Sequence record: LR756511.1
Direction: 5' to 3' (one strand)
DNA: 64,000 nucleotides
Each line of letters begins with the position of its first letter. Positions within the stretch are counted from its first letter, which is position 1. The notes under the pieces were generated by a model. The model was not told the DNA's origin. It searched no databases and saw nothing but the letters and a program-made list of their open reading frames with translations. Shown here one piece after another: positions 9,534-58,484 of the stretch. The position numbers were made by a program, and so were the translations under genes.

Positions 9534-10061
9534 TTAAAATTCTAATCCTTCTGAATCAAAAGTAATTCCCTGAGCCTTCAATCGACGTGCATAACCCTCT
9601 AAATCTGGAACGAATTTTACGTTATACCACTTCTGTATAAACCGAAGCGGCTTTCGAATCATTTCCTGACGTTGGGCCTGTCGAGGATCACTACTGAAAA
9701 ATTCGCCGCTCGGCGTTTGTGAAAAGACTGATGGGGAGAATTGAGAAAGATAAGGCCGATAGGAAGCAATCTTTCGCTTATCATCTTGGTCAAATACCAC
9801 CGTAGGACGGTCATCCGCTTCTCGCGTAACAACCCACCTTATATCAAGGGGCGTTGCATAAGGAATGACATCTTTTAATTTCCCAGCAAATACACCCTTT
9901 TCTTTTTGCCAACCCGAAGGAATCTTCTCCTGTGTGTCAAATGTACCGCTACCTTTCCAGTCTGGACTACGATAATAAGTTCTCATATTGGCTGAGAAAT
10001 CGCCAATCGGGTCTTTGTCAATACGATAAACGTTTTCCCACCATCCCTTAAAATTTAACAT
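9534..10061 (-). CDS. Hypothetical protein with CTS-like leader (MLNFKGWWE)
   Basis: 175-aa ORF; TATAAATA 4 nt before ATG. Confidence 0.75.
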   Translation of the reverse strand: MLNFKGWWENVYRIDKDPIGDFSANMRTYYRSPDWKGSGTFDTQEKIPSGWQKEKGVFAGKLKDVIPYATPLDIRWVVTREADDRPTVVFDQDDKRKIASYRPYLSQFSPSVFSQTPSGEFFSSDPRQAQRQEMIRKPLRFIQKWYNVKFVPDLEGYARRLKAQGITFDSEGLEF

Positions 10062-10065
10062 ATCC

Positions 10066-10073
10066 TATTTATA
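10066..10073 (-). promoter_or_regulatory. T4-type late promoter TATAAATA
   Basis: Exact T4 late consensus in an 18-nt divergent intergenic gap. Confidence 0.7.
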
Positions 10074-10079
10074 TACTGT

Positions 10080-10274
10080 ATGGAATACAAAATCGTTTAT
10101 GGCACAGGCAACTTAGGAGTAAGGCCGATTTATACCAATCAAGATGACAACGTAGGTCAGATTATGGACCAAGCCTTAACATTACCTTCCAAGACTGCTC
10201 CTACGATTCTCTATACGGTCAAGACTCTTGATCCAACCCTTCCATTTTACCTTGTTGTAGGACCAAAACTATGA
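10080..10274 (+). CDS. Small hypothetical protein
   Basis: 64-aa ORF, stop overlaps next ATG. Confidence 0.55.
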   Translation: MEYKIVYGTGNLGVRPIYTNQDDNVGQIMDQALTLPSKTAPTILYTVKTLDPTLPFYLVVGPKL

Positions 10275-10633
10275 AATTAGATTTCAGAGACTTCACAGAA
10301 GCGGTGCTTAGAATAAACAACCCCTTTGACCCACTTGGACGTGGAGCTAAAACCGTTGGTATAAATAGGGTCGATCCAGAAGAAATTGAACACCTAAAAG
10401 CCGCCAGAGATGCCTTACAAGATAAAGCAATGGGCAATACTGCGGTAATTTCAGCATTGGGCCATTTGCAAAAAGCAATGATGATTGTGGGTCAAGCAAG
10501 CCCGCATTACAAAATGCTAACTCTTGCTGCCGATTATCTAAGTAAACAAGGAAGCGGCGCAATTCCAGTCGATCTAGCCCGCTCTCTCCAAGCTATTGAT
10601 GTTGCAATTAAACAAATTAATCAAGCGGCTTAG
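10271..10633 (+). CDS. Hypothetical protein with CTS-like leader (MKLDFRDFTE)
   Basis: 120-aa helical ORF. Confidence 0.7.
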   Translation: MKLDFRDFTEAVLRINNPFDPLGRGAKTVGINRVDPEEIEHLKAARDALQDKAMGNTAVISALGHLQKAMMIVGQASPHYKMLTLAADYLSKQGSGAIPVDLARSLQAIDVAIKQINQAA

Positions 10634-11286
10634 TACAGGAAAATCCAATCATTCGGTATCAGGACCAGAGTTACACTTGATTCTTCAAGCAGGAATCGAC
10701 TGGAGTAAGGACTATAATCATCCCTGGCGGTTATCCCTTTGTCTAATGCTAAAACTATATCAATACCAGCATTGATAATGACTTTTACACATTCGATACA
10801 TGGAACGCCGCAATAACAAAACATATATGCGCCCGCGACACTTCTATTTGCCCTAGCAATCGCATCAATCTCACCATGAATACAACTGCATAACTCAAGC
10901 CGTTTGCCTCTAGGAGCGTCCACAATTTTCCTTGGGCACTCCCGCGAATTACAAAAGTTTCTCGCAAATGCCTCGCATACAGGCATTTCGTATTCAAACT
11001 TCATTGTAAACTTTGACTTAGCGTTCTCTATCTCTTCGTGAGTCAATTGTGGGAAGACTATCTTCTCCAAGTAGTCCGCATCGTCATTACCAGGACAACC
11101 TTGTGGTGGGCCATTGTGCCCTGATGAAATTAAAGAATTGGTGTCGGGGTCTACAATGACGACGCCAATTTGCCGCGACAAACAAGGACTTTCAACCTCC
11201 TTGACCGCCTTGGCAAGCTTGAACCATTTTCTAGCTTCTTCGTGCTTTAGCTTAAAGTCGTGCGGAAAGAAGTTTTTCATTTTCAT
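10630..11286 (-). CDS. dCMP deaminase family protein
   Basis: SPCLSRQIG, SGHNGPP, HGEIDAI, PCIECVKVIINAGI. Confidence 0.88.
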   Translation of the reverse strand: MKMKNFFPHDFKLKHEEARKWFKLAKAVKEVESPCLSRQIGVVIVDPDTNSLISSGHNGPPQGCPGNDDADYLEKIVFPQLTHEEIENAKSKFTMKFEYEMPVCEAFARNFCNSRECPRKIVDAPRGKRLELCSCIHGEIDAIARANRSVAGAYMFCYCGVPCIECVKVIINAGIDIVLALDKGITARDDYSPYSSRFLLEESSVTLVLIPNDWIFLY

Positions 11287-12509: not shown

Positions 12510-12514
12510 CGTCC

Positions 12515-16376: not shown

Positions 16377-17426
16377 TTAAACCTCTGTGAACTCCAATTG
16401 AACCACAGATCGCCAGATCAAACCAATAACCAATAGGAAGAATGCGTATAAACCAATCCATCCTGATATAGAATTGTCCTTCATCTGCTCCTTCATCTCA
16501 TATTCGGCAGCTTGACTAGAAGCTATTTCCTCATAAATCTGCTCTAGCCGCCTCTTGTCATATCCACTTTTAACGATCTCGCCACGACCACCTGTAGCTC
16601 TGGAATACTCTATAATCGTGCTATCCAGGTTGAAAATCGAAATGAAGTATACCCGAATGCCCAACATTTTGCAAAAGTTGATAATCTTGTAGGAAGACAT
16701 CTTCTGCTCCGATCCACGCGGATCAAAAATACCGTCTGTGAAGATGATGATTGAACCACCCTTGAAATGCTCTTTCTTGGCGACAATACTCTCTAAAACA
16801 GGGTCCATCTTCACATGATGCTCCATCCCCAAAAATCTAATCTGCAAATGATTCAAGTCTTTCTCTGGAACTACATCCTTGTAGGATAACAACATATCCA
16901 CCCCAGCCCATAAACCAGCCTCAATATCGGTGCCCTGGTTCATTGGCTCTGCACGGTAATCAATCCTCTTCAACTTCCTTTGCACAAATTGTGGGTCTTC
17001 ACTCAGGTTCGATACCACAAACGCATCATTAGAGAACACAATCGCGCCAACCAAATCCTTTGTGCCGTCTTTCCGTTTGCCAAGAACATCGAATAGTTTA
17101 TCATTGCCGCTTAAAACAGCGGTCAATTCATCGCCAATGCCATTTTCCTTGGAGCCATTCACCATCGAACCGCTACCATCGTTGACCAAAACATACTTGT
17201 GGGCTAGGTATGTTTTGGTAACTTCTTTCGTCTTCCAGACGAAGTTACATGCGGCGATGAGGAACAGGAAAGCGACCAGCGGAACAAATTTTATTGTATC
17301 TTCGCCACCTTTACTCTGAACGTGTTGAAGGTATGGATGGCGGAAATAGAACTTCCTAACTTTCCTGTACCACCAATACAAAACAAATAAGAGCAAAAGT
17401 AACAGGAACCAAGGATACTCAATCAT
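16377..17426 (-). CDS. vWA-domain membrane protein (BatA-like)
   Basis: YPWFLLLLLL N-terminal TM, DGSGSM MIDAS, GTDI..GL, IIFTDG, C-terminal TM. Confidence 0.85.
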   Translation of the reverse strand: MIEYPWFLLLLLLFVLYWWYRKVRKFYFRHPYLQHVQSKGGEDTIKFVPLVAFLFLIAACNFVWKTKEVTKTYLAHKYVLVNDGSGSMVNGSKENGIGDELTAVLSGNDKLFDVLGKRKDGTKDLVGAIVFSNDAFVVSNLSEDPQFVQRKLKRIDYRAEPMNQGTDIEAGLWAGVDMLLSYKDVVPEKDLNHLQIRFLGMEHHVKMDPVLESIVAKKEHFKGGSIIIFTDGIFDPRGSEQKMSSYKIINFCKMLGIRVYFISIFNLDSTIIEYSRATGGRGEIVKSGYDKRRLEQIYEEIASSQAAEYEMKEQMKDNSISGWIGLYAFFLLVIGLIWRSVVQLEFTEV

Positions 17427-18843
17427 ATTTTCGCTCGAAACAGAATCTACTGAGGGTCTTCCTCAATAACTCAACATTTGGATTACTTTCATTCTCTCGA
17501 AATACCCTATTCAACTCCTGCGTCAACATCTTAAAGTTATCATTGCACTTATTTAGGTCAAGACTATAGAGAGATACACCCCAACAAGCATTCAAAACCC
17601 TATTCAATCTAGATGCAATGAGAAGATATTCTTTCTTCCAATCTTCATGCACAGTGCCAGTGCTACCAGCCAACTCACTCCACAATTCAACCTTATGATC
17701 TGGTTTACGCTTCTTACGATTGGCAAAATCCATATATACCAATGAAAGCATTAACACTGTCAACCCACCAAGGAACGTAAGCACTGGAAACTTGGCACTA
17801 TTCATAAATATATCCTCAGCCTCCAGAGTCCACGGCTCTTTGAAAGGTCTAATCTCATTAATATGCAAATACGGGAAGTTGCGAGCCTGGATATCCTCTA
17901 TCTCTGTGCCTTCGATCACGCTCTTAATCCCAAACTGACAGAGATTAGATTTAGTGGTTCTCAACTTGTTGTGATGCTCGAAAGACACAATCACTGGCTG
18001 AATCACAAAGTTACCAAAGTTCAATTCCCTAAATGGATACTTAACTATAATCGTCTTCCTATGCCCATTCTGGACTTCCTCAATCTCTTGCGGAAGTGAA
18101 TCTAGCCATAATTCACCTGGATTTGGAAATGGAACTAATGTCTGCCCAAACTGAGGTAACAAATCCTTGCGAACACTCACTTCTGGATTCATTACATCAA
18201 TCGTTAACTTCAAAACTCTCAATTCCCCTAAGTGGGAATTAGCTTCCGTTTCCACAGAAAGTGTAGCCTTCACAGGATCAGCCAGTGGAACCCACGCAAT
18301 TACCGCCGTCTTAACCCAAAAGCTATCCTTCGCAATCAGATTAGCCAAGACAAGCATATTCGAAGGATACTTGAGATTGTCAACCTGAACCACATATAAT
18401 CCAGGCCCAACATCCTTAATTACCTTATAATCAGCCTTTGTTTCATCTGTGAGACGCTTTATTAGGTCTTCCTTGCTCACATTTGGCTGAACTCTGATAA
18501 GGATTTCATTAATCGCTGAGCATTCAAACCCTTCATACATAATGACAGGATAGACAGGCTTGCCCTCAAGCTTATTAAGGGCAGCAAATGTTTCCGCTTT
18601 TGTCTTGAAGAACAACAGCAGTCCATTAAGACGGTCGTTCTCGATTTCTTTAAACCGCTCTACACCACCCATCTTCTCGATGGACTTAATAAATTTCTTC
18701 TTGTCATCGGCTGAAGAAATGTCAACATAAAGTTTGTTGACCATGACCGCACCATGACTGTGCAATTCATCGTCGTAGTAGTGGAAGTCTTCTGGTTGAT
18801 ACCCGCCAAGTAGTATAGTTGCGGCTAGAATTAAGCTATTCAT
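17419..18843 (-). CDS. BatD-like exported protein
   Basis: Signal peptide, beta-rich middle, C-terminal TM; position in MoxR operon. Confidence 0.5.
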   Translation of the reverse strand: MNSLILAATILLGGYQPEDFHYYDDELHSHGAVMVNKLYVDISSADDKKKFIKSIEKMGGVERFKEIENDRLNGLLLFFKTKAETFAALNKLEGKPVYPVIMYEGFECSAINEILIRVQPNVSKEDLIKRLTDETKADYKVIKDVGPGLYVVQVDNLKYPSNMLVLANLIAKDSFWVKTAVIAWVPLADPVKATLSVETEANSHLGELRVLKLTIDVMNPEVSVRKDLLPQFGQTLVPFPNPGELWLDSLPQEIEEVQNGHRKTIIVKYPFRELNFGNFVIQPVIVSFEHHNKLRTTKSNLCQFGIKSVIEGTEIEDIQARNFPYLHINEIRPFKEPWTLEAEDIFMNSAKFPVLTFLGGLTVLMLSLVYMDFANRKKRKPDHKVELWSELAGSTGTVHEDWKKEYLLIASRLNRVLNACWGVSLYSLDLNKCNDNFKMLTQELNRVFRENESNPNVELLRKTLSRFCFERKYD

Positions 18844-19676
18844 TACGTCCTCATCAAGTGCTTGACCAATGGAAGTAAAAATCTTTCCTGTTTTACGTCC
18901 AAGAAAATCACATCGCTATAACAACCTAGTAATTTCTTCTTCAGGTCGGAAGACCATTCATCAAAATCTGATTTTGCCGACTTTGTATAGTAAGTGCCCG
19001 TCGCACCTGTTTCGGCATCCTTCAAGGTCACATAACAACTTGATTTCAAGGATGCAAACCAGTCGGACGGATTGTGCATGACAACATTCAAAAAAGTATT
19101 GGTAGGTGTTAACGCAATCTTCTTAATGTTGTTCAAAAAGCCATCGGTGATAGGATAACAAAAATCAGAAATAAAAACAACGAGGGAATTCTTGAGAGAC
19201 AAATCGGCAACCTTCTTCAAACTCACTTCAACAGATGTTTCTGAGTCCATCCGCAACATATTCCACGCCTTCTCAATATTCCCGATCACCGAGGAATAAT
19301 CTTCCGCTACGTCTGTAATTGCCGAACCTGTATCTGTACAAACACACAAACCAATTCGCTCGTTATTAATATCACCTAAATAACAAAGATACAACGCCGT
19401 TACTACAGCAGCATCCAACTTGCTATACTGAGATGAGCTTAAATCTAAAACAATGAATAAGTTTAAAGATCGCTCAGGATTAAACACTCTTGACATAGTT
19501 CTTCCAGATTTAAGGCTGGATTTACTGTCTAAGCGTTTATCCCCAGGCTGATACTCCCGCACAACATCCACTTCAATCAAACTATCTTTAAGCAAAGTGG
19601 GATGGTTGCCAGAAGAAAAGCTATCGAGAAACTTCTTCGCTGTTAACTCTAAAGAACGAAAGTTCTTCTTTTTCAT
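18843..19676 (-). CDS. DUF58 family protein
   Basis: VREYQPGD, ER.LNLFIVLDLSSS, VVFISDF; follows MoxR. Confidence 0.85.
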   Translation of the reverse strand: MKKKNFRSLELTAKKFLDSFSSGNHPTLLKDSLIEVDVVREYQPGDKRLDSKSSLKSGRTMSRVFNPERSLNLFIVLDLSSSQYSKLDAAVVTALYLCYLGDINNERIGLCVCTDTGSAITDVAEDYSSVIGNIEKAWNMLRMDSETSVEVSLKKVADLSLKNSLVVFISDFCYPITDGFLNNIKKIALTPTNTFLNVVMHNPSDWFASLKSSCYVTLKDAETGATGTYYTKSAKSDFDEWSSDLKKKLLGCYSDVIFLDVKQERFLLPLVKHLMRT

Positions 19677-24375: not shown

Positions 24376-25065
24376 ATGAGTGACTACAATCTAGAGCCAA
24401 TTGTTGAATACCAAATGACCGAACCCGAAGCAATGGCCTACAAGATAGGCTTGCTTTGGATGGCAATTTCAACAGAAATGTTCCCTGATTACAAGCACTC
24501 TTGTAGATTTCCTAAAAAGGGCGATCCAAGAAAAAGCAGTTTGTTTAGATACTGTCATACCTTAATGACCAAGACTAAAGGCTTAATTGATCCTAAAGAT
24601 TATAAGCTATATATCGCCGCTCAACTCCAGATGCTTAAAAGCATTGAGATTGGCAATACCCACCCTCTCATCGGTCCCTGGTGTCTTGTAGGCGACAAAG
24701 CCTGGACACGCTGGAAAGTTTGGAGAAATAAATATGACAATGTAGTAAAAGCCAAAACTTTGAAAGATGTAGGTTTAGATAAAACTAAATTTTCCGAAGT
24801 TAAAGTTGGCTTAGATCAAACGAAAAAATTCATAACCGACAAGTGGGGAACACTAACCGAAGAAACATATAAAACAATAGCAAAAGATATTGTTCGCTAT
24901 GCATCACTCACAAAGATTAGCCATTTTTACTTGGCCATATCACCTTGGGCAAACAAATACTGCGATCTTTCAAACGTTGATCTAACGTTCTATAAGAACG
25001 TTGGTGAGGATGCTAAAGACTACTTCAAACAGTTATTCCCGAACGAAACCAATGGTACCCTCTAA
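24376..25065 (+). CDS. Hypothetical protein
   Basis: 229-aa ORF divergent from upstream gene with a 9-nt gap. Confidence 0.7.
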   Translation: MSDYNLEPIVEYQMTEPEAMAYKIGLLWMAISTEMFPDYKHSCRFPKKGDPRKSSLFRYCHTLMTKTKGLIDPKDYKLYIAAQLQMLKSIEIGNTHPLIGPWCLVGDKAWTRWKVWRNKYDNVVKAKTLKDVGLDKTKFSEVKVGLDQTKKFITDKWGTLTEETYKTIAKDIVRYASLTKISHFYLAISPWANKYCDLSNVDLTFYKNVGEDAKDYFKQLFPNETNGTL

Positions 25066-25975: not shown

Positions 25976-26764
25976 TCAGTAGCAATTAAAATGAGCAAGC
26001 ACAGCTTCTAGAATTTCGTCTTGTTTTTGTGCTGGACTGAACCATTCTATAAAGTTTGAAGGGTCGTAAATCCAACGGTGTTTGTCGATCTTATCCCCCA
26101 ATGGAGTGCCGCTAAGCTTAATCAATCCATTGTCCTTGTGGTATTCGACGTGAATAGCAAACTGATCTAAGCGTTTCTGCCCTCTTCTCTGAACGCCCAT
26201 GCCCGTCACGCCGAAGTGAATGATATATTTTTCGTCCTGTTGAATAACACGAATACCTTCATACATGAAGATTTTTTGTGTGGTGTTTCTTCGAAGATTG
26301 CTTGCCATTTCAATAACAAGTCTTTGTAGACCTTTATAATCTCTCAACGGCGTATCCAAGCCTTCGTAGTCGATTTTGTCTAAGTTTTCTCTAATCTGAA
26401 AAACAAGTTTGTCTGGTAGATCGTCGTAGAAATTCTTTACTTCTATGACCTTTTTGCATATCCATTGAGGATCACCAGCCAAATCATGAATAAGCTTTCT
26501 AATAATGACTCGATTGCCGCCAAAATTGCTGAAATACATGCGAATTGCACCGTCATCGCTACCCCATTGCAATTCGCCAAAATGATCGTTAGGTATAGCG
26601 TATTTTTCACCTAAGATTGTAGTTTTTAAAGACTTAACCACATACTCTACATTTAAAGGCATGAGAGGCTTGTCTCTATTCTTCATTTCTGGCTCTTTTG
26701 GACGTTGAGTAAAGTCTAATCCAAAATCGGCGTATTCATTAAACCACGAAGCAAAGCTTTTCAT
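25976..26764 (-). CDS. Hypothetical protein with CTS-like leader (MKSFASWFNE)
   Basis: 262-aa ORF; TATATATA 5 nt before ATG. Confidence 0.75.
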   Translation of the reverse strand: MKSFASWFNEYADFGLDFTQRPKEPEMKNRDKPLMPLNVEYVVKSLKTTILGEKYAIPNDHFGELQWGSDDGAIRMYFSNFGGNRVIIRKLIHDLAGDPQWICKKVIEVKNFYDDLPDKLVFQIRENLDKIDYEGLDTPLRDYKGLQRLVIEMASNLRRNTTQKIFMYEGIRVIQQDEKYIIHFGVTGMGVQRRGQKRLDQFAIHVEYHKDNGLIKLSGTPLGDKIDKHRWIYDPSNFIEWFSPAQKQDEILEAVLAHFNCY

Positions 26765-26793
26765 TATGTTATATATACCAGAGAGGAAACAAC

Positions 26794-27198
26794 ATGAAGA
26801 ATTTTAGGGTCTGGTTAGAAGAAAAATTAGCAGTAAGAAATCTAAAACACACTTTGCTTAATGCTTTAGGTTTTGCAAAAGACGCCTTAGATAACGGAGG
26901 CGATATTCCTTTAAGAAAAGTGAATCAAAAACGACTACTCGACCAACTCAGCAACATAGGCTTAAACAAGAAGGCCCAGGAAATTTTACAGAATTATGCT
27001 CGTAATAGCTGGAATGGCGGAACTTTGAATGCAATGTTGGCGACGATTAAGGATAGCGATTTTGAGCAACAGGACACGTTATCCAGTGAGCCTGCGGTAT
27101 TACCACAGGCTAACGAACCTGTTCCTAAACCAATTAATAAACAACAAATGATCCAACAACAGCAACAGCAGCAGCAAATGCCGCCGCAAGGTTATTAA
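26794..27198 (+). CDS. Hypothetical protein with CTS-like leader (MKNFRVWLEE) and polyQ tail
   Basis: 134-aa ORF with SD-like AGAGG. Confidence 0.7.
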   Translation: MKNFRVWLEEKLAVRNLKHTLLNALGFAKDALDNGGDIPLRKVNQKRLLDQLSNIGLNKKAQEILQNYARNSWNGGTLNAMLATIKDSDFEQQDTLSSEPAVLPQANEPVPKPINKQQMIQQQQQQQQMPPQGY

Positions 27199-33531: not shown

Positions 33532-33716
33532 TGAAATTCCTGCAACTTCTTAAAAGTGATAACATCCCAAAAGTGAGTCCAACAAGTGTCGGCCTTAGCT
33601 TTTGGATTATTTACTTGCCAGAAGTAGCATGATACAGAAATGAATAATAAAAAGCAAAGCAAAATTCCAAGGATGAAATTAGCTACGTCTACGTCCTCTA
33701 TTCGCCTTTCTTCCAT
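33528..33716 (-). CDS. Small membrane protein
   Basis: Single hydrophobic helix. Confidence 0.55.
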   Translation of the reverse strand: MEERRIEDVDVANFILGILLCFLLFISVSCYFWQVNNPKAKADTCWTHFWDVITFKKLQEFQ

Positions 33717-34009
33717 TTTCGTTCAACTTTAGAGTTATCCCAAAAAACGCAACACATATGACTTGTGACCCATTCTTGGACATCTTTATGTGTGCAGAAC
33801 CCAACACCTTTTTGGGCGGAACTTTTCATGAATAGACAGTTTCCACAATTAGTTCCCTCCACAGGCAACGTAATCAGGTCGATCTTCTTGAATTTCTTAA
33901 CTTGATCGGGAGCGGGATCAAAGCCGCCCTGATCGTTCTTCTTCTCTGGAACTTTTTTACCAAATCCCGCTTCTAGTTGACTATTTTGCCATTCGTTGAA
34001 ACTAATCAT
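33698..34009 (-). CDS. HiPIP-like Cys protein with CTS-like leader (MISFNEW)
   Basis: CGNCLFM...GFC...VTSHMCCVFW pattern. Confidence 0.55.
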   Translation of the reverse strand: MISFNEWQNSQLEAGFGKKVPEKKNDQGGFDPAPDQVKKFKKIDLITLPVEGTNCGNCLFMKSSAQKGVGFCTHKDVQEWVTSHMCCVFWDNSKVERKWKKGE

Positions 34010-39778: not shown

Positions 39779-40324
39779 ATGATGAATTTTGCACAATGGG
39801 TAGAAAACGAAATGACACTCCCTCTTCCTGACGCGAAACAGTTTTCGTACATCGCTTGCGTTCTTGACGAGATGAGTCAAACTCACTTAGAGAGCGCAAC
39901 GAAAAAGTGGTTTTTCGAATTTTTCGGCCATGACGTGCCGCCTAGCTGGAGTTGGCGATGTCACCATATGACCGTTCTATTCCGTCAAGGCGGCATTCTA
40001 ACCGAAGACTTAGAGAAGTATCGACAATACTTTGGTGATAATGTTGTACTACACATTAAAGCTATTGTGGCCGACGATAATGCGGTTGCAGCCCTTGTTC
40101 GCCCAAATATCAATTTCCCAATACAGAACCCAATTCCGCATATAACCATTGCGCACTCTAAGAGCGTATCTCCAGTTTATAGCAATTCTTTGTTATTAAA
40201 CAGAGAAAAGTTCCATAAGGTTGAAACTGTAGATGTAAACTCAGTTTTTGCGGCTGTTAAAAAGAACCAGACGGATATTTGGCCCGAAAAACCGTTTAAG
40301 CTAGCAAGTCCCGTAAAATCCTAA
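39779..40324 (+). CDS. 2H phosphoesterase (cyclic phosphodiesterase-like) with CTS-like leader
   Basis: Two HxT motifs (HHMTV, PHITIA); N-terminus MNFAQWVENE. Confidence 0.75.
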   Translation: MMNFAQWVENEMTLPLPDAKQFSYIACVLDEMSQTHLESATKKWFFEFFGHDVPPSWSWRCHHMTVLFRQGGILTEDLEKYRQYFGDNVVLHIKAIVADDNAVAALVRPNINFPIQNPIPHITIAHSKSVSPVYSNSLLLNREKFHKVETVDVNSVFAAVKKNQTDIWPEKPFKLASPVKS

Positions 40325-40986: not shown

Positions 40987-41157
40987 TTCGCTGGCGATTT
41001 CTTTCTTTGTGGCGTTAGACATGCCTTTTTGATATTGAATTCCGATTACCCATTGACCTTTTTCATTTGTGGTTAGCTTTGTGCTTTCAAAGAAAGGTCT
41101 TTTCTTCAACCATTCTGAATATTGTTTCTCAAGTTTTTTCAGGTGATCGTACGTCAT
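40936..41157 (-). CDS. Small hypothetical protein
   Basis: 73-aa ORF. Confidence 0.55.
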   Translation of the reverse strand: MTYDHLKKLEKQYSEWLKKRPFFESTKLTTNEKGQWVIGIQYQKGMSNATKKEIASELGDIPLKWIMLPENKS

Positions 41158-41518
41158 TCTTTCCTCGCTCCCTTACTTGAACATAAAAAATGAAGGAATT
41201 AGGGAGTGGTTGCTCTGTATTTTTGTCCACTTGTTGATGGTATTTAACATGCAGTCGTGTATCTCCCTGGTCATAGTTTACCAAATCTTTGATTCTCGAT
41301 ACAATAGAATTTATAAATTGTTGGGTTCCTGTGACTCTAACTCCATCATATGTTAGGGTTGAACCCTCTATATTAGAAGGCACAATTTTAAATGGTTGTA
41401 TTGGCGCATTTGGCGGTAAACGATTCCAGAAGGATAGAATCTGCTCTTTATTTGCTCTCCAAGGTTTAATAGGAGCTACGATCTGACTTTGCTCGCACCA
41501 CTCCCTGAAACTTAACAT
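41129..41518 (-). CDS. Hypothetical protein with CTS-like leader (MLSFREWCE)
   Basis: CATAAATA 4 nt before ATG. Confidence 0.7.
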   Translation of the reverse strand: MLSFREWCEQSQIVAPIKPWRANKEQILSFWNRLPPNAPIQPFKIVPSNIEGSTLTYDGVRVTGTQQFINSIVSRIKDLVNYDQGDTRLHVKYHQQVDKNTEQPLPNSFIFYVQVRERGKNDVRSPEKT

Positions 41519-43324: not shown

Positions 43325-43546
43325 ATGAACAACTGTGAATCCTGCCGATGGCATATGGAAAATACCAATCCCGAAGAAACGCCAAGCTTTGTTCGGGGGT
43401 GGGTGTGGGACCATTTGTTAAATTGCGAAGCCTGTAAAGATTGGGCGTGGGACAAACTTACACTAGAGCAAAAAGAACAAGTAGATCGAAATAGTCCGAG
43501 TGTTCCTCAAGAAATGCATTTTTGTTTAAATAAAGACTCTAATTAA
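43325..43546 (+). CDS. Small Zn-finger-like protein
   Basis: CESC...HLLNCEAC. Confidence 0.6.
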   Translation: MNNCESCRWHMENTNPEETPSFVRGWVWDHLLNCEACKDWAWDKLTLEQKEQVDRNSPSVPQEMHFCLNKDSN

Positions 43547-43872
43547 CCTTGCGGTTGCTGCCACTGTTGGTATTTTGCCATCCAAGGTTGTTTAGCAACT
43601 TCCAACGCTTGTTGTACAGCCTGTGCCAAGTTCATTTGTCTGCCCTGTATCACTCGTTGTAACCCATCTAAAGTCTGTTGTTCTTGTCCCCGTTTCATTT
43701 GAAGTAATTGGTCTAGTGCCGCTTTTGTCGCGGTATCCGCATCACTCAACATTCCAGCATATTGAGGATATTTCGCAGCCAGTCCTCCCACTTTGAATGG
43801 ATTCTTTACCCAATCCCATACTCCTTCATCTAGTGGATGCTTTTCTACAATCCATTCCGCGAATGTCTTCAT
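43543..43872 (-). CDS. Q-rich protein with CTS-like leader (MKTFAEWIVE)
   Basis: Start re-assigned to ATG 43872, 4 nt after CCTAAATA. Confidence 0.7.
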   Translation of the reverse strand: MKTFAEWIVEKHPLDEGVWDWVKNPFKVGGLAAKYPQYAGMLSDADTATKAALDQLLQMKRGQEQQTLDGLQRVIQGRQMNLAQAVQQALEVAKQPWMAKYQQWQQPQG

Positions 43873-43887
43873 GCCATATTTAGGCAC

Positions 43888-47121: not shown

Positions 47122-49971
47122 ATGGTAAGAGAATTTGTGAGTTGGGTGAAAAAGAAGCGATTGGATGAAGGTATTTGGGGCAACTGGACTTACGAAGTTC
47201 CTATTGACCCAAAACAACAGATGTATGACTTTTACATGCTGGAATATTTACTTCCTCACGGCATTGGTTTGTACTTAACGGTATTTGACTTCGACCCTGA
47301 CGAAAACAAACAAGGTGAAATCGACCCTGAAACGGGAAAGGCACATGGCGAGCCAGCCATGCCCCTCCAACGTAAGTTTAATATGGCTTTATATGAAGTT
47401 GCCAACAAGCTTTTACCAGCTTTAAAGAAAGAGCTTTTAAAAGCTGTTGAGTTTGCGGTTGCCGCAGAACTTAGGCACATCGAAGGCGATTCTCTTGAGA
47501 ATATTCAATATGGCGGCAGTTATAAAGAAAGACTAAAGATGTTAATTCAAACAGTAAAAGAAAAGCGTGGCAAGGCTGACGCTGATTTACTGCGAAGATA
47601 CTTTGTTGCTTACAAGCAATATATGGGCGGCGAAACCAAGGAATTTATGCCGCGTGATCCGCTTGATCCACTTTATGATTATGGTGAAAGCGGCAAAGGC
47701 GGCACACATCAAGAATATCGTAGATCATTTCGTGCTATGAAGGATGCTGGCGGTTCTACAGAGCAATGGATGAGCCTTGCTAGCTGGTTATTTACTAACG
47801 CTGAATGGAATGAAGCATATGGCGGAAAGAATTGGGCACTCATTGCTGACGCATGGGGCCATCTATATCACGCTAAAGCAGCACACGAAATAATTACGTA
47901 TATTGACCATGTTTATGACCTACAACATAACACAGGTAGTGTTTTCACCAAATTACCAAAATTCTCCAAAAACGGTAGCTTTAAATGGATCGAGAAAGCT
48001 TTGGACCATAAGCGGGATATGGTAGCTCCACACGAATTTATTGAGCATTTGTCAAAACCTATGCAGGAATTGGCACTTATTGGCATTAAGTTAAAAACTG
48101 GTAAGACCTTCGGTGACTTTGAAGCAGATTGGCCTGAAATCGTCAAAAAGAAAACAGAAATCCACAATTACAACATGGAAAAGAAGTGGGAAAAAGAGAA
48201 AGAAAAATATTTTTCACAGAAAGCCAGGACGTATTATGAGCAGCAATTACAAGGCTGGGAAGCTGAAAAGAAAAATTATCTGAAAAACAATCCAGGCGGG
48301 GAATTCACTGTTCCTAAGCCAACGCGGTTATCAGCAGAAGACTATCAAAAGAAATTCCCTCATCAAACTTTTTACAATCCAAAACCTAGTCCTATTTCCG
48401 TAGACACGTTTGAAAGAAACGTGGTAACGGACACTGGTAGTCCTTATAGCGTTGCCCGTTTAACAAAACATCATAAGCTGGGACAAGATTCTAGATTTTC
48501 CCACTTGATAGGAAACGGCACACCAGACGTTCCTAAGAAGATTACTGACTATCATCCAGGGGATCAGGTGTCTACACACTGGCCACCTAGAGAGTGGTTA
48601 ACGGTTACGGGTATTCGTCCTGCATCATTCGAAGGCGCAACAGAGTATCTTGACATAGATGGCTTTGCTTTAAGATTAGATAGGGTTAAGGGCTACTTGT
48701 CTAAAGACGCAAAAAATCCCGCACAGATATCGAAACCACCACAGGAACCAGTCTATGACTATCACAACAAACAGATTAATGTTGGTGATCGGGTAAAGCA
48801 ATTTAGCTCATCCACAGATAAAAGTGGCCAAGTTGAAAAGATTGCGAATGGCTGGGTATATGTAAAGTGGGACGATGGCATATCGCAGAAAGCATATATG
48901 CCTTACCTTTTGGTCGTCCTCAAAGATATTAAAGACAAAAACGGAAAAGTAATCAAAGTGGGCGACACCGTAACCTATTCAGGTTATGTTACTGGCGCTA
49001 TTACTAAAATAAGCGATTCTGGCATTGTAACTGTTAAATCTCCATCAGGAATTGCTGGACAATATCAAGCGTCGGATTTAGAAAAGATTGAAAAAGCAAA
49101 AGAGCTTGTTGACAAGCACGGCAAGCCAATTAAAGTTGGCGATCTTGTGAAGTGGTCATATGGTGGTGGTAGAATCCGACAAATAATTGGCAATCAAATT
49201 AAGATTGATTTCCACGGTGATGTTATTACAAAGACGGCAAACGAACTTGAACTCATAACAAGCCCAATGGAAGCCAAAGATTTTAATGGCAAAAACATTA
49301 GCGTAGGCGACAAAGTAATTTTCAGAGCTAATTCTGAATTTGTCGGAAAAGCTACTGAAATTACACCTCTTGGTGAAGTCAAAGTTAAGTGGGACCAAGA
49401 AAATCTTGGCCACACTTTTCTAAATGGTTCCGAATTGATCGTGCAGGTTCCTACACCACAAATGCCAGCGCCTGCACCACAACCATCTTCAACAATGTCC
49501 TCTATCAAGTTGACGTGGGATGATTTGAAGGGTGTTCCAGTTGTTCTACGATTTGTCAGAACTATTAAGGCCATCTACACACATAGTTCCATTGAAAATT
49601 ATGTCAAACAAATATCACAAGCTGTTGGTGTGCCAGTTGAAGAAAAAGACATGGTAGCAATTAAGAAAATGTTTTGGGAAGAAGATACCAAGGAGAAATA
49701 CTATAAACAACGCGGCATGGCTCTCTTCCCACATGACCTTAAGCCGAATGATGCAGTAAAAGTGAAAGCAACAAACTACCCAAGTCCACCGCCCGTGTTC
49801 TTGGATCATTTAACTGGCGATAAAGTGGAAGCCGCTTTACTTGCACATAAGAATGAGGAAGCGGTCAAAATAGTTCAAGATAAAACCAAGTTTGGCACCG
49901 TTGCGGCGAAGGGACTTGTTATATTGTTTAAGTTAGATTTATTTGCAAACGGCATGTACCAAGCAGCATAA
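47122..49971 (+). CDS. 949-aa protein: CTS-like leader, conserved helical NTD, KOW/SH3-like repeats, L12-CTD-like end
   Basis: MVREFVSW; repeats D..(G)K.I.VGD.V (x4); terminal EAVKIVQDKTKFGTVAAKGLV; GATAAATA 5 nt before ATG. Confidence 0.8.
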   Translation: MVREFVSWVKKKRLDEGIWGNWTYEVPIDPKQQMYDFYMLEYLLPHGIGLYLTVFDFDPDENKQGEIDPETGKAHGEPAMPLQRKFNMALYEVANKLLPALKKELLKAVEFAVAAELRHIEGDSLENIQYGGSYKERLKMLIQTVKEKRGKADADLLRRYFVAYKQYMGGETKEFMPRDPLDPLYDYGESGKGGTHQEYRRSFRAMKDAGGSTEQWMSLASWLFTNAEWNEAYGGKNWALIADAWGHLYHAKAAHEIITYIDHVYDLQHNTGSVFTKLPKFSKNGSFKWIEKALDHKRDMVAPHEFIEHLSKPMQELALIGIKLKTGKTFGDFEADWPEIVKKKTEIHNYNMEKKWEKEKEKYFSQKARTYYEQQLQGWEAEKKNYLKNNPGGEFTVPKPTRLSAEDYQKKFPHQTFYNPKPSPISVDTFERNVVTDTGSPYSVARLTKHHKLGQDSRFSHLIGNGTPDVPKKITDYHPGDQVSTHWPPREWLTVTGIRPASFEGATEYLDIDGFALRLDRVKGYLSKDAKNPAQISKPPQEPVYDYHNKQINVGDRVKQFSSSTDKSGQVEKIANGWVYVKWDDGISQKAYMPYLLVVLKDIKDKNGKVIKVGDTVTYSGYVTGAITKISDSGIVTVKSPSGIAGQYQASDLEKIEKAKELVDKHGKPIKVGDLVKWSYGGGRIRQIIGNQIKIDFHGDVITKTANELELITSPMEAKDFNGKNISVGDKVIFRANSEFVGKATEITPLGEVKVKWDQENLGHTFLNGSELIVQVPTPQMPAPAPQPSSTMSSIKLTWDDLKGVPVVLRFVRTIKAIYTHSSIENYVKQISQAVGVPVEEKDMVAIKKMFWEEDTKEKYYKQRGMALFPHDLKPNDAVKVKATNYPSPPPVFLDHLTGDKVEAALLAHKNEEAVKIVQDKTKFGTVAAKGLVILFKLDLFANGMYQAA

Positions 49972-49982: not shown

Positions 49983-52067
49983 ATGCTAGAAAGCTTTATA
50001 GGCTGGATCAAAAATATAAATGAAGTTTGGGGGTCATCGTGGAAGTATGAAGTTCCAGAGGACAAGGAACAACAGCTTTATGATTTCTACATGATAGAAT
50101 CATTGCTCCCACCTGGAGTAATGTTATACCTAAAGCCATTTGATTTCGGCCACGATAATCCGCCAACTGGCTATTGGGAACATCCTAGAGAAGATCAAGT
50201 ATATTATGCCATCTATGAAGCAGCAGGAAAGCTTATTCCTACCTTAAAGAAAAATTTGCTTGATGCGGTGCTGTTTTCCATCATGTCTGAACTTCGACAC
50301 GTCTTAGATGTTTACGTTGATGACTACAGCGGCAGTCATTATGCTGGGGAAGGCAAGGAAGGAATTAGGGGCTTAGCCAAACGAGTGCGTAAGGAATTCG
50401 ATCCAGAAACAGAAAATATGTTTAAGAATTATATCAAAAATATGGTTCTACATACCAGACCAGAAACAGCTGCTTTCATGCGAAGAAAAAAAGTGCCAGA
50501 AGACCTAAAATCCAGTCACGAATCTAGAAGGGCGTCCTTTCAAGCAATGCTGAAAAGCGGCGGCACTCCTGAAAAATGGGTAGAATTAGCCCGACATTTA
50601 TTCCAACATGAACAGTGGAATGTATCTTTCGGTGGCCCAGCATGGGCCGATATTGCCGAAGGATGGTTAAAGTTATATAAAGCCTCAGCTTTAGGGCATC
50701 AAATTGCGGCTATTGACCGAATTTATGACTTGCAACATAATACTGATACTGTTTTCAACAAGGTTGAAAGCTATCTGAAAGATGGAGGTTACGACTGGCT
50801 TAGAGCCGCCCTAGACCATAAAAGATACATTCAGTCCCCATATGAAATTATTGATAAAGTATCTCCGTGGATGAAAATTCTCGCAAAGAAAGCAATGTGG
50901 GTCATTAAAGGTGTTTCTTGGGCGGAATTTCAGGATAAAAAGGAAGACTATGACAAACAACGTCAAGCTGCCATCCATCAGAAGTATTATGGATCGCCAC
51001 CGAAGGAACCAGAGGTAGAAGAACCAGAAGTACATGACCCTGCGAAAGATTATGTAACACTCAAGTCTCCGTCCCTTTCTTATTATCCGTGGTATGTTAG
51101 CGTGGCCCGAATTGCGTACCGTGTTCCAATGTCTTTTAGTGCATCAGATGAGGAACGAGTTAAGAAAGTTATGCAATATATGGAACTTGATACATCGGAA
51201 ACGAATATAGATAAAGCAGTAGGCCAACTAGAACGGGAAAGACATAATGACCAATACTACGCTGAAAAAGTCAGCATAACAGGACCAGTTGCAGAGTTTA
51301 TAGCCAAGCAAGAGGCAATAAATTTATTAGCACAACACTTCCATGATGCCCCACAAGTTATACTAGACCCATATGATTTTGATGCCGTGATTAACTATTT
51401 GAAACAGGGGACACATAATGGTATAGAAAATGCTAGAATAAAGCTTTCGCAAGCTACTAACTATACACCAACTGCTCTTGATAGTTTAAGATACTATATT
51501 TTCCTAAAAGCAGTCGCAGAAGATAAGTTTGGCGAGGAGTGGGCAAAGCAAGGATATGAAAAACAACAAGCGGCACTAAAAGAAAAATTAACTACCGCTT
51601 GGCTTCCCGTCTCTAGTAGTTCTTTACCAATCGAAACAAAGCTGGCTAGGGTTTTACGTTTGACTAACTACGAATGGAAGAAAATCAAACCAGATGACTT
51701 AATGGCGGCGGTGAAAGTTCTTAATTTACCAATGGGAGTTCTGCAAAAGAAGCAAGCATGGGACATCTTCCAAAAAGAAAGGCAAATGGAAGAATACTTC
51801 GATAAACACTTGGTTACTAGCGTTTATGACGCTACCGATAGGCCAACTGTCTACAAATTATTAGAAACCCACTTCCCTAATGCTCCTCAAATTAAACTCG
51901 ATCCAAAAATCGAAAAAGAACTTGAGGCACTGATATTGAATAAGAATAAAAAGATCAGTGCAATAAAATTATTCAGAGAACAGACAGGGTGGGGTTTAAG
52001 AGCTTCCAAAGACTACGTTGAATACTTACAGCTTGAAATGATCTACTTGGGCGCAAAGGTTGCTTAA
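49983..52067 (+). CDS. 694-aa paralogue: CTS-like leader, same NTD, C-terminal L7/L12-CTD-like domain
   Basis: MLESFIGW; shares QxYDFYM, ELRH, GG..WA.IA, YDLQHNT, ALDHKR; ends KKISAIKLFREQTGWGLRASKDYVE. Confidence 0.8.
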   Translation: MLESFIGWIKNINEVWGSSWKYEVPEDKEQQLYDFYMIESLLPPGVMLYLKPFDFGHDNPPTGYWEHPREDQVYYAIYEAAGKLIPTLKKNLLDAVLFSIMSELRHVLDVYVDDYSGSHYAGEGKEGIRGLAKRVRKEFDPETENMFKNYIKNMVLHTRPETAAFMRRKKVPEDLKSSHESRRASFQAMLKSGGTPEKWVELARHLFQHEQWNVSFGGPAWADIAEGWLKLYKASALGHQIAAIDRIYDLQHNTDTVFNKVESYLKDGGYDWLRAALDHKRYIQSPYEIIDKVSPWMKILAKKAMWVIKGVSWAEFQDKKEDYDKQRQAAIHQKYYGSPPKEPEVEEPEVHDPAKDYVTLKSPSLSYYPWYVSVARIAYRVPMSFSASDEERVKKVMQYMELDTSETNIDKAVGQLERERHNDQYYAEKVSITGPVAEFIAKQEAINLLAQHFHDAPQVILDPYDFDAVINYLKQGTHNGIENARIKLSQATNYTPTALDSLRYYIFLKAVAEDKFGEEWAKQGYEKQQAALKEKLTTAWLPVSSSSLPIETKLARVLRLTNYEWKKIKPDDLMAAVKVLNLPMGVLQKKQAWDIFQKERQMEEYFDKHLVTSVYDATDRPTVYKLLETHFPNAPQIKLDPKIEKELEALILNKNKKISAIKLFREQTGWGLRASKDYVEYLQLEMIYLGAKVA

Positions 52068-55680: not shown

Positions 55681-55700
55681 TTTCTTTAATCCTCTGGAAG

Positions 55701-55783
55701 TGGTCAAGGAGGGATTCGAACCCTCACGCCCTTACGGGCACTGGCTCCTAAGGCCAGCGTGTCTGCCGTTCCACCACTTGACC
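55701..55783 (-). tRNA. tRNA-Leu(UAG)
   Basis: GGTCAAG acceptor, CTGGC-CTTAGGA-GCCAG, long variable arm, GGTTCGAATCC; no CCA. Confidence 0.93.
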
Positions 55784-55789
55784 TACTAC

Positions 55790-56400: not shown

Positions 56401-56652
56401 TCATATGTCAGACGCCTTTCTAGTCTTCAAATATAAACGACTATCCTGCTCAACATCCTTCGCTGGTCTTCTTGGACTAGGTTCGCCGTAAACTACCCAG
56501 CCATCATCCCACTGGTCCGTATCCTCAATTCGAAGTTTCAAAACCTTATCTTTTACACAAAATGGTTCTGGAATATAACTAACTTGTTCCATATAGCCAT
56601 CAGGCGTCTTTTTCCTCAATGTGCATTGCCTGTAATATAAGTCTTTTTTCAT
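56401..56652 (-). CDS. Hypothetical protein
   Basis: 83-aa ORF. Confidence 0.65.
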   Translation of the reverse strand: MKKDLYYRQCTLRKKTPDGYMEQVSYIPEPFCVKDKVLKLRIEDTDQWDDGWVVYGEPSPRRPAKDVEQDSRLYLKTRKASDI

Positions 56653-56816
56653 TTTTCAACTCCAAGTATTCTTCTGCCAACTTCCTTAATATATTTTTCG
56701 TGGTAGAATCTTCGCACACAATTATGCAATTTCCCCAATCAAGTTCAAACGTTGAGTTTCCCCAAGTGCGATCTCCTGCCAATTCTTTTGCTAAATATTC
56801 TACATCTGTCATTTTA

Positions 56817-57824
56817 TCACCCGTAACTAGCACAAAACTCTAACTTAATCGGATAAACCTTCTGCTTAGAGTAATCGAAATCAGGATCGTTGGATAAGTC
56901 CCAATAAGCTGCTGGGAACTTTCCATATTCCCTTGGATTCCATTCTTCAATTTTGCAATGCTTCTTAAACAAAGCGTGCCAACGATCCCAATTGTCATAT
57001 TCGGATAGTTGTATTGTGAGCATATAAGGATACTCGCCCCAACCTATTTGAGCATTCACATAATTCGGCCTGTGTCCACCAATTATAACCCTAAACTTAT
57101 TTGCAGCCAAAACCGCAAATCGCATTTCCAATGCTGCACGAATGCCCTTCTGCTGTACTACCAATTTATAAGGAGCGTTGTCTTCGTCCTCTATCTCTAC
57201 CAATTTAGGGATCAAATCATCAATTTCTTGCTTGAAAATTGGATCAATTGTAAATGGCTTAGGCACTTTAGGTGGTAATGGTTCCATCTTCCTAATGCGT
57301 TCCGCTGCCTCCGCGTATGGAACCTTAAGTCGGTTCCAAACTTCTAAATGTTCGGGCCGTTCACGAAAATTTGCCACAACATTCCATTCGTCATGGTAGG
57401 AGTGGGTATTATCAGGCAAACCTTTTGCTTTAAATGTCACTGTAATTGGTGGGTCGATACCCTTACAATCATCATGGAACACAAGATAAACTTCGGATTC
57501 AGATGCCGTTGAGAATCTTTTTAACTTATCGTAATAAGCTAGCTGTTCTTCGCATGGTGGACCGTAACAATCGTTGTGTTGATAATCACCACTTACTCTA
57601 CGGACCATATTCAATTGTTCAGCTATTTGCTCATCTGTTGCGCCACGCTGCACATAAATGCTGTTTACTGGACCGTCTGCTAGGCCAATTTGTGCGCTTA
57701 GATAATACCTTTCTTGTCTATTCCATTCCTCAACGTGGTCGCCGTTGGAATAGTCCAAGAAGTTTCTCATCGCAAAGGCGTCCAAAGGGGTCCATTCGCC
57801 CCAAATGCCTTTCTCTGTATCCAT
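56817..57824 (-). CDS. Hypothetical protein
   Basis: 335-aa ORF with SD AAGGAG and sigma70 promoter. Confidence 0.75.
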   Translation of the reverse strand: MDTEKGIWGEWTPLDAFAMRNFLDYSNGDHVEEWNRQERYYLSAQIGLADGPVNSIYVQRGATDEQIAEQLNMVRRVSGDYQHNDCYGPPCEEQLAYYDKLKRFSTASESEVYLVFHDDCKGIDPPITVTFKAKGLPDNTHSYHDEWNVVANFRERPEHLEVWNRLKVPYAEAAERIRKMEPLPPKVPKPFTIDPIFKQEIDDLIPKLVEIEDEDNAPYKLVVQQKGIRAALEMRFAVLAANKFRVIIGGHRPNYVNAQIGWGEYPYMLTIQLSEYDNWDRWHALFKKHCKIEEWNPREYGKFPAAYWDLSNDPDFDYSKQKVYPIKLEFCASYG

Positions 57825-57843
57825 AGGGAGTCTCCTTAACCCT

Positions 57844-57871
57844 ATTATACTACGGATTTACCGTTTGGCAA
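57844..57871 (-). promoter_or_regulatory. sigma70-type promoter
   Basis: TTGCCA-16 nt-TATAAT. Confidence 0.7.
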
Positions 57872-57896
57872 GGAAGAAAAGCTGCATATATAAGGT

Positions 57897-58484
57897 ATGC
57901 TGGAGTTCCGACAATGGTTTGAAGCCTATCAAGTGCCAAAATCGCACATTACGATCAAACTGCCTTCAACAAAGCAGACAACCAACTATTCTTGTGGACC
58001 CGTCAGTTTAAAAGCCATTGCCCGTTACTTCAAAGTCGGTCCAGATGACGAACAGTATTATATTCGCCTCTGTAACGCCAACTCCAAAGACGGCACAACC
58101 CCAAATAACTTAACCCAAGCCGCTAAGAAATTAGGACTTTACGTTAAGTTGAAGCAGAATATGACTTTAGATGAGCTAAAAGAATATCTGGACAGGAAAG
58201 TGCCAGTCATTTGCGACATTCAAGCATGGGGAAACAAGAAAGATTTTGCCGATGATAAAGATGGGCATTATGTTGTGGCAATAGGCTACAGCAACAGTCA
58301 CATTTATTTTATGGACCCTTCGGTAAAGGGAAGTCATGGATACTTGTCTAATGCTGAATTTTTAAGTCGTTGGCATGACGAAGAAAAAGGCGGTAAGAAA
58401 ACTCATCGCCTTGGTATTGCTATTTGGAAAGATACCCCCGAAAAAGAAAAGCAACAACTTCACAAGGTAAAAAAAATTAAATGA
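57897..58484 (+). CDS. C39-like cysteine peptidase with CTS-like leader (MLEFRQWFE)
   Basis: KQTTNYSCGP, GHYVVAIGY, YFMDP; CATATATA 4 nt before ATG. Confidence 0.85.
   Translation: MLEFRQWFEAYQVPKSHITIKLPSTKQTTNYSCGPVSLKAIARYFKVGPDDEQYYIRLCNANSKDGTTPNNLTQAAKKLGLYVKLKQNMTLDELKEYLDRKVPVICDIQAWGNKKDFADDKDGHYVVAIGYSNSHIYFMDPSVKGSHGYLSNAEFLSRWHDEEKGGKKTHRLGIAIWKDTPEKEKQQLHKVKKIK

Follow-up and report, generated by a model that had tools for sequence, protein, structure and literature searches.

Predicted T4-Type Capsid-Targeting Leaders, in a Phe/Trp Version, on about 55 Proteins of a Huge Uncultured Phage

The stretch of DNA analyzed here (64,000 nucleotides; the window) is free of N and matches LR756511.1 exactly at positions 372001-436000; this record is a 595,163-bp assembly, unannotated and described as "uncultured phage." Eleven of the ~102 genes callable in the window, and ~55 of the ~1090 callable in the genome (~5%; ~37 with a strict pattern and 18 with relaxed F/Y/W variants), encode proteins with a common N-terminal leader in which two spaced aromatic residues are followed by Glu. 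We put at roughly 0.65 the probability that this shared N-terminus is a T4-type propeptide for targeting to the capsid (prohead core), i.e., a Phe/Trp version of the T4 capsid-targeting sequence (CTS). By analogy with T4, the proteins would be packaged, cleaved after the Glu, retained in the virion, and injected, with injection being the least certain step. The phage probably packs its head with an unusually large protein set that would be delivered along with the DNA.

The leader family and its start-proximal box

A first-pass annotation of the window had proposed that about 11 of its genes share a CTS-like leader. All 11 N-termini could be read at the expected positions in the window and are listed below, in part with the TAAATA/TATATA box that precedes many of them. 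The set, however, is not limited to these genes, as it has at least 55 members genome-wide and many in related phages.

9534..10061 (-): 175-aa ORFan; leader MLNFKGWWE (nucleotides 10035-10061), predicted cut after E9
10271..10633 (+): 120-aa ORFan; relaxed leader MKLDFRDFTE, with F..F, of the "LDF[KR]x[WF]" subtype
25976..26764 (-): 262-aa protein; leader MKSFASWFNE, followed by YADFGLD
26794..27198 (+): 134-aa ORFan; leader MKNFRVWLE(E)
33698..34009 (-): 103-aa protein; leader MISFNEWQNSQLE, TTAAATA box
39779..40324 (+): 2H (CNPase / tRNA-ligase-CPD-like) 2',3'-cyclic phosphodiesterase, 180/181 aa; leader M(M)NFAQWVE
41129..41518 (-): 129-aa ORFan; leader MLSFREWCE
43543..43872 (-): 109-aa ORFan; leader MKTFAEWIVE, of all leaders the nearest to MKTYQEFIAE of T4
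47122..49971 (+): 949-aa product without assigned function (phrog_20946); extended leader MVREFVSWVKKKRLDE with L-D-E where the cut is predicted; GATAAATA box
49983..52067 (+): 694-aa paralogue of the 47122 protein; leader MLESFIGWIKNINE, I-N-E at the predicted cut
57897..58484 (+): C39-type cysteine peptidase, 195 aa; leader MLEFRQWFE, TATATAA box

Ten of these genes have F-x-x-W with the Phe at residue 3-5, compared to ~0.4 expected by chance from the amino acid composition (F, 4.7%; W, 1.7%; Poisson P = 2e-11). The eleventh, 10271(+), carries the F..F variant, and "LDF[KR]xW" leaders of its subtype recur elsewhere in the genome, the rest of which was analyzed as overlapping pieces, one by one. 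A genome-wide scan against a shuffled control, the check suggested in the first-pass annotation, found the strict pattern at 29 longest-open reading frame (ORF) starts; 500 shuffles yielded a mean of 3.7 and a maximum of 11. The position of F..W peaks at residue 4 (17 cases) and residue 3 (7 cases). Several apparent matches at an "internal Met" proved to be true starts, preceded by the same upstream box. A position-specific scoring matrix built on 37 curated members has the consensus M-K-T-F-x-[Q/E]-W-L-E-E-K-E; at a score of ≥12, it selected 38 starts in called genes versus 4 in ORFs that the gene caller had not selected. Those four belong to three small ORFs skipped by the greedy gene caller, one of them with two nested starts. 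A few extra members, beyond the ~55, are found among the box-bearing genes. The window is modestly enriched in leader genes relative to the rest of the genome (11/102 versus 44/988; Fisher P = 0.014).

The leader is conserved at the protein level, given that its synonymous codons vary. The Phe codons are TTT in 32 cases and TTC in 20, the same as in the genome overall, and Leu at position 8 is encoded by TTA, TTG, CTT, CTA, and CTG. No nucleotide similarity among the leaders was seen when they were compared. Three look-alikes in the window were not counted. The Amidoligase_2 protein at 3886-4821(-), which starts with MRKFLYW, was judged a chance match, as it has neither an acidic or hydrophilic tail after the Trp nor a box; MMNNYWLE of 41526-41852(-) has the wrong spacing; and the N-terminus of 42665(+), MKTVAFW..., is hydrophobic and of the membrane type.

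As had been claimed, the protein bodies behind the leaders are unrelated except for one pair. An all-against-all BLAST comparison of the proteins without their first 16 residues revealed a clear relation only between the 47122 and 49983 proteins (37% identity over 338 residues); the one other match was short (21 residues, E = 1e-4) and involved two small members outside the window. In the related pair, close agreement resumes just past the predicted cut (...RLDE|GIWGNWTYEVP versus ...NINE|VWGSSWKYEVP, sharing WG..W.YEVP). The mature parts are basic, with a median isoelectric point (pI) of 8.7 versus 6.9 (P = 2e-4). Most of the leader proteins are ORFans, many of them small (52-130 aa), and the large ones have 949, 694, 1076, 1039, and 486 aa.

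A TAAATA or TATATA box that ends 3-9 nt upstream of the start is present in 56% of leader genes versus 4.6% of other genes, and TAAATA exactly 4-5 nt upstream in 17/55 versus 13/1041. In the window, a box 4-5 nt before the ATG is found in the 26764(-)/26794(+) spacer and ahead of 10061(-), 41518(-), 43872(-), 47122(+), and 57897(+). The TATATAAATA box of 10061(-) and the CATAAATA box of 41518(-) each end 4 nt upstream of the ATG. The divergent 26764(-) and 26794(+) genes have one palindromic TATATATA box in common, located in the 29-bp spacer 26765-26793, and 26794(+) carries, in addition to its TATATA box, an SD-like (Shine-Dalgarno) GAGAGG. A second divergent leader pair with the same arrangement is seen at genome positions 473532(-)/473554(+). 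The start of 43872(-) is an internal ATG of the GTG-started ORF 43543..43887; because a CTAAATA box lies directly upstream, ending 4 nt from this ATG (CTAAATA-TGGC), the ATG is likely the true start rather than the GTG at 43887. The 39779(+) protein reads MMNFAQW, and the true start of its gene may be 39782. The 10271(+) gene has no box and overlaps the stop of a 64-aa ORF upstream.

Box-bearing leader genes usually lack an SD sequence, and the position of the box 4-5 nt from the ATG suggests leaderless or near-leaderless mRNAs in this clade. The same box precedes the genes for a baseplate wedge subunit (phrog_219, 2e-31) and a head-tail adaptor (phrog_211, 6e-13). About a quarter of the leader genes, both here and in relatives, have an SD sequence and no box, so that the peptide motif is not a by-product of the box.

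Likeness to T4 and the predicted head cargo

In the T4 record, both IPII and IPIII begin with MKTYQEFIAE, the sequence quoted as the CTS in 10.1101/2021.01.19.427310. In T4, the internal proteins IPI, IPII, and IPIII and Alt carry the CTS (Mullaney and Black 1996; reviewed in PMC9026906 and PMC3012670). In the first of these reviews, the first 10 residues are described as sufficient, based on the amber-suppressor work of Mullaney and Black, with targeting mainly via residues 4 and 7 and processing via residues 8 and 10 (PMC9026906). The positions fixed in the present family are those mapped in T4: aromatic 4, aromatic 7, aliphatic 8, and Glu 9 or 10. Applied to 76 kb of T4, a single generalized regular expression singled out IPII and IPIII and nothing else; in the huge phage, it matched 8 window ORFs and 43 ORFs elsewhere in the genome. 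In both phages, the carriers are otherwise unrelated, mostly basic proteins, and their ~10-residue N-terminal peptide has an MKT start, aromatic residues 4 and 7, aliphatic residue 8, and a Glu as its end; both phages also have gp21 (S77), gp23, and gp20 as protease, capsid protein, and portal. In contrast to Tyr4 and Phe7 of T4, however, the leaders studied here have Phe and Trp; many of the carriers have the TAAATA/TATATA box 4-5 nt from the ATG; and none shows detectable homology to T4 internal proteins. Most of the papers that use the term "capsid targeting sequence" were covered by the literature search, and none of these deals with huge uncultured phages or a Phe/Trp variant.

The predicted cleavage site is the sequence [LIVMFW]-x-E, found within 10 residues after the second aromatic residue in 43 of the 55 leaders (78%) versus 16% of control segments. 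The resulting propeptides would have 8-16 residues, mostly 9-12. With the Glu at position 9, the Trp would be the P3 residue, and it is the Trp itself that occupies P3 in 20 of those 43 leaders.

The head genes were located outside the window, as follows (genome coordinates):

523506-524981: gp23 capsid protein; phmmer with T4 gp23, 9.7e-36; Pfam Gp23, 2.5e-86
525953-526621 (-): gp21-type S77 prohead protease; phmmer with T4 gp21, 3.7e-23; Pfam Peptidase_S77, 2.5e-27
531014-533587 (-): gp20 portal; phmmer with T4 gp20, 3.1e-34; Pfam Portal_T4, 2.6e-73
535401-537242: gp17; phmmer with T4 gp17, 1.4e-28
242240-243133 (-): another S77 prohead-protease paralogue of 297 aa, diverged and distant from the head module; Pfam, 3e-8

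The prohead protease aligns with T4 gp21 across the GEL(N/D)HP (here GELDHP), SSRG, and DAV motifs that contain the His, Ser, and Asp residues. In the capsid protein, the Pfam model begins at residue 69, and the N-terminal extension holds an L-F-N-E61 site; T4 gp23 is cut after L-T-E65, at the counterpart of this position. Among cultured phages, the capsid protein reaches no more than ~33% identity to its counterparts (Microcystis phage Mel-JY01, Xanthomonas phage XacN1, and T4-like cyanophages), and identity to those of cultured T4-like phages is about 30%. The position of gp22, between the protease and capsid genes, is taken by a Glu-, Lys-, and Ala-rich ORF of 310 aa, a candidate scaffold by position alone; no similarity of its product to gp22 or any Pfam family was detected. 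Searches of the 595-kb genome using phmmer with T4 gp55, gp45, gp44, gp62, and gp43 and with the "late sigma factor" of XacN1 found nothing, and gp46 and gp47 were the only T4 replication or late-transcription queries that matched. The lack of gp22, gp55, gp45, and gp43 homologues indicates that this phage shares the T4 head module but not the T4 genes for replication and late transcription. In the 857-aa portal gene product, the Portal_T4 domain is preceded by an insert that resembles an intein (Intein_splicing, 3.7e-8, which falls below the Pfam cut-off).

The proposed sequence of events is as follows. Late in infection, each protein would be made with an amphipathic leader of 8-16 residues, M-K/L-T/S/N-F-x-E/Q/D-W-hydrophobic-(x0-3)-E. 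The aromatic residues at positions 4 and 7 would dock it on the scaffolding core as the gp23-type shell assembles around it. The gp21-type S77 protease would then cut after the Glu of hydrophobic-x-Glu and free the mostly basic mature protein inside the head, to be ejected later together with the DNA.

Two other systems invite comparison. In phiKZ-like giant phages (phiKZ, 201phi2-1, and SPN3US), many internal head proteins are likewise cut after Glu by a gp21-related protease, and their propeptides are thought to target them into the prohead (PMC5694885, PMC7411985); a second diverged protease paralogue is found there too, similar to the one listed above in the case of the SPN3US-like phages (PMC5694885). 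However, phiKZ-like propeptides mostly exceed 100 residues, have no short common N-terminal consensus, and are cut at (S/A/G)-x-E. The leaders described here are uniformly 8-16 aa long, with a common consensus and a hydrophobic P3, and do not fit the phiKZ type. The cargo-loading peptides of encapsulins similarly bring unrelated enzymes into an HK97-fold shell by means of a short conserved terminal peptide. They are, however, usually C-terminal and unrelated in sequence, are not removed by a maturation protease, and the cargo is not delivered to another cell.

The first-pass annotation also named a diverse cargo, including a 2H phosphoesterase, a C39 protease, a HiPIP-like protein, and two giant proteins. 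Both enzyme assignments held up. The 2H enzyme (39779+) matches its Pfam family at 7.7e-9; in its AlphaFold2 model (predicted local distance difference test score, 91), the leader forms, at residues 3-10, a helix of low confidence that stands apart from the fold and is followed by a linker, with the first strand of the fold at about residue 21. The modeled fold matches 2H phosphodiesterases of the CNPase and tRNA-ligase-CPD type, with template modeling (TM) scores of 0.5-0.6. A search of the PDB with the 2H sequence found no match. An Acb1-like anti-CBASS role of this enzyme is unsupported, Acb1 being a weak structural match (TM, 0.38). The C39 peptidase (57897+; Pfam, 5e-14) has a catalytic domain that begins at about residue 18-23, and its nearest solved relatives are the PeiR endoisopeptidase and the ComA peptidase domains. 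In the 33698..34009(-) protein, the body has a C-x2-C-x13-C-x13-C pattern whose Cys spacing fits a HiPIP, but the score of 17.8 bits is below the Pfam cut-off of 22, and the label was dropped. The two large leader proteins are present, with sizes of 949 and 694 aa; a tblastn search of 50,697 phage records for relatives of the former matched only the source record. Other assignable leader proteins are a HAD_SAK_1 phosphatase and a PRTase-domain protein. The 9534..10061(-) protein has no Pfam or PHROG match.

Outside the window, a cluster of four leader genes (genome 466654-475513) is interleaved with a head-tail adaptor gene and a weakly gp15-like gene, and the block is kept in two contigs (L029 and L023) at 55-90% identity. 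Its leader genes are the following (genome coordinates):

469121-472279: ORF of 1052 aa, or 1039 aa counted from the leader start at 472240
473239-473532: leader gene
473554-474063: leader gene
474060-474467: leader gene

Relatives and alternative explanations

The leader is conserved in orthologues. The 262-aa protein (26764-) has 52 metagenomic homologues with 44-73% identity, some of them on contigs of 586-623 kb. In 50 aligned sequences, conservation reaches at least 90% at M1, F4, and W7, E10 never varies, and YADFG is conserved as well. The spacing from Trp to Glu varies, and the longer inserts end in L/I-x-E (RLTE, QLDE, RIDE). In the 2H enzyme family (41 matches), M-x-F-x-x-W-F-x-E is kept ahead of the conserved LPDARQFSY, with the leader aromatics present in most of 39 aligned sequences. 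Other orthologue pairs exchange W, Y, and F yet retain the i/i+3 aromatic pair; the homologue of the 41518(-) protein in contig L052 starts with MKRFADYMRE.

The distribution of the leader was surveyed in IMG/VR with a back-translated MKTFx[EQ]W[LF]E pattern, using the same codons in reversed order as a control. There were 47 matches in 43 viral stretches, of which 40 had no in-frame ATG upstream; many were preceded by CTAGATAGGGC or CTAAATAGAGC, and several of these loci hold 3-5 more non-identical leaders. The reversed-codon control found 4 stretches, all within ORFs, and a search of 596 Gb of prokaryote genomes found 16, about 13 of them within long ORFs. Many of the leader-bearing viral contigs are related to LR756511.1, with capsid proteins 75-80% and proteases 58-60% identical. 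The clade is large: close relatives of the capsid protein were found in 388 IMG/VR stretches, on contigs of up to 533 kb. The literature search found no paper that mentions LR756511.

A possible lead on virion packaging comes from the cultured relative XacN1 (AP018399.1), whose ORF272 product ("chitinase") was reported to be packed in virions (PMC5852040). The ORF272 gene (L078:21880-22587) lies two genes downstream of the capsid gene. Its frame stays open for another 24 codons ahead of the annotated start, back to an unannotated ATG, from which it reads MKNNPFIKWFE|YPD; this ATG is preceded by a terminator-like hairpin and AATAAATA-N5, the same arrangement of box and leader as in the window. 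Nearby, ORF299 contains KFSEYLAE and ORF270 contains LSFKDYYDNKE. The M23 peptidase ORF322 of XacN1, located in the baseplate module, is uninformative with respect to head loading.

The reading as a Trp-variant CTS of the T4 type, which the first-pass annotation had put forward, thus draws support from the T4-mapped positions, the S77, gp23, and gp20 genes, the unrelated basic bodies, and the orthologue leaders with their invariant Glu. Several observations weigh against it. The ~55 carriers, ~5% of the genes, compare with a handful in T4. The hydrophobic-x-Glu site is absent from 12 of the 55 leaders, and the Glu is mostly at position 9, whereas T4 has I8-x-E10. T4 gp22, gp67, and gp68 queries found no match in the genome. 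In the related contigs L022 and L024, the C39 peptidase has homologues without a leader, so the leader is a module that can be acquired or lost. No concentration of leader genes is seen by the head: near the capsid gene in 80 related loci, their density is 35 per Mb versus ~65 per Mb in the whole genome. The capsid gene is closely followed by three leader genes in this genome and in L014, L017, L021, and L034, a proximity that was accordingly dropped as evidence. The XacN1 lead is a single case that depends on a putative, unannotated start codon. Finally, with no gp55, gp45, or gp43 homologue found, the box is a putative late promoter of the T4 type, as suggested by its resemblance to the T4 late promoter TATAAATA and by the structural genes that carry it.

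The low density of leader genes by the head module and the very large size of the family would also suit a role other than head loading: the leader could serve a different late process as a docking or regulatory tag, for instance one recognized by a phage chaperone, an adaptor, or a protease that times activity or turnover, or as an amphipathic helix for transient attachment to a membrane or assembly site. The leader is short and amphipathic, and the enzymes behind it (2H phosphodiesterase, HAD, PRTase, and C39 peptidase) could equally act in the infected cell. Such a tag nevertheless seems unlikely, because it would leave unexplained the match to the T4 CTS at functionally mapped positions, the presence of the S77/gp23/gp20 module in the genome, the invariant Glu and the enriched hydrophobic-x-Glu after the aromatics, and the basic bodies. 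The leaders have no hydrophobic core, twin-arginine motif, or lipobox, so that they are not classical secretion signals. The proteins might also be targeted to the prohead core and yet act there as core or scaffold, or be degraded or expelled, like T4 gp67, gp68, and gp22, rather than be delivered as effectors. The T4 prohead protease also destroys core proteins (PMC5694885), and many family members are small ORFans; however, several others, whether folded enzymes or large proteins, have just the one site at the N-terminus, and a basic pI fits residence with the DNA, making this outcome improbable for the set.

The two remaining explanations deny the peptide a function of its own. Conservation could reflect a signal in the 5' coding region of leaderless late mRNAs, i.e., a nucleic acid or translation feature, considering that the start follows a TAAATA box by 4-5 nt in 17 of 55 genes, leaving transcripts nearly without a 5' leader, and that A/U-rich codons 2-4 (AAA ACA TTT) are common. 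Against this, it is the amino acids that are fixed, with synonymous codons free to vary; the SD-only quarter of the family has no box, and other box-bearing genes have no motif; and Trp7 and Glu 9/10 are kept in orthologues despite varying spacing from the ATG. We consider an mRNA signal very improbable. Still less credible is a functionless recombination scar, with promoter and 5' cassette copied together, or mere chance. Sharing of the CTS may aid the shuffling of internal-protein genes in T-even phages, and leader and box do co-occur here; but the leaders have no nucleotide identity, purifying selection is visible over orthologues that are 44-73% identical, and the enrichment far exceeds both the shuffles and the reversed-codon control.

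Neighboring genes and implications

The window is not a structural-gene region. Its gene content includes RecA, a DnaB-like helicase, a family-A DNA polymerase, two more helicases, a MoxR-type AAA ATPase with a VWA protein, aspartate carbamoyltransferase, a Sir2 protein, a sulfotransferase, and six tRNA genes. Further features are listed here (window coordinates):

3886-4821 (-): Amidoligase_2 protein, starting with MRKFLYW
16377-20743 (-): MoxR-type AAA ATPase (AAA_3, 8e-38), VWA-domain protein, and membrane-like ORFs, in one gene run
25025-25960 (-): aspartate carbamoyltransferase, 2e-38
27487-28506, 59141-60163, and 60438-61529 (+): MA(L/I)xFxxGF(D/E)xY proteins
34011-34784 (-): sulfotransferase (auxiliary gene)
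36123-36854 (-): Sir2-family protein, 1.2e-41
55700-55783 and 62397-63893 (-): six tRNA genes, five for tRNA-Leu (TAG x2, TAA, CAA, CAG) and one for tRNA-Tyr

The minus-strand MoxR/VWA run is flanked by the genes for the DnaB-like helicase and the family-A polymerase. The tRNA-Leu genes make up a nearly complete set of Leu isoacceptors. A different N-terminus, MA(L/I)xFxxGF(D/E)xY, is common to three window proteins of ~340-360 aa that have no Pfam match.

The leader system is a variant of a known one. What stands out is its scale, together with the Phe/Trp consensus, the coupling to a box close to the start codon, and the spread of the system in an uncultured clade that is abundant. Tentatively, and with rather less assurance than for targeting as such, the MKTFxEWLE-type code may mark the encapsidated and injected proteome of this clade, with genomes of up to ~600 kb and ~5% of the genes pre-loaded. 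If so, among the proteins delivered would be three enzymes (a C39-type peptidase, a HAD phosphatase, and a 2',3'-cyclic phosphodiesterase), a PRTase-domain protein, and proteins of ~1000 aa without a known function. Such a repertoire would be about an order of magnitude above that of T4 and readable straight from sequence.

A genuine head-loading signal would make the cargo of an uncultivated huge phage predictable, which today requires purified virions and mass spectrometry. It would provide the first functional handle on dozens of ORFans, as proteins that arrive with the genome and act before transcription, and would point out candidates for early host-takeover or anti-defence functions. It could also supply alternative protein-packaging tags for engineered phage capsids. 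The leaderless late mRNAs, if confirmed, bear on how huge phages organize their gene expression. For the head lineage with gp23 and gp21, the finding would mean that the T4 CTS rule, with aromatic residues at positions 4 and 7 and a cut after Glu, holds throughout and can be expanded to ~5% of a genome.

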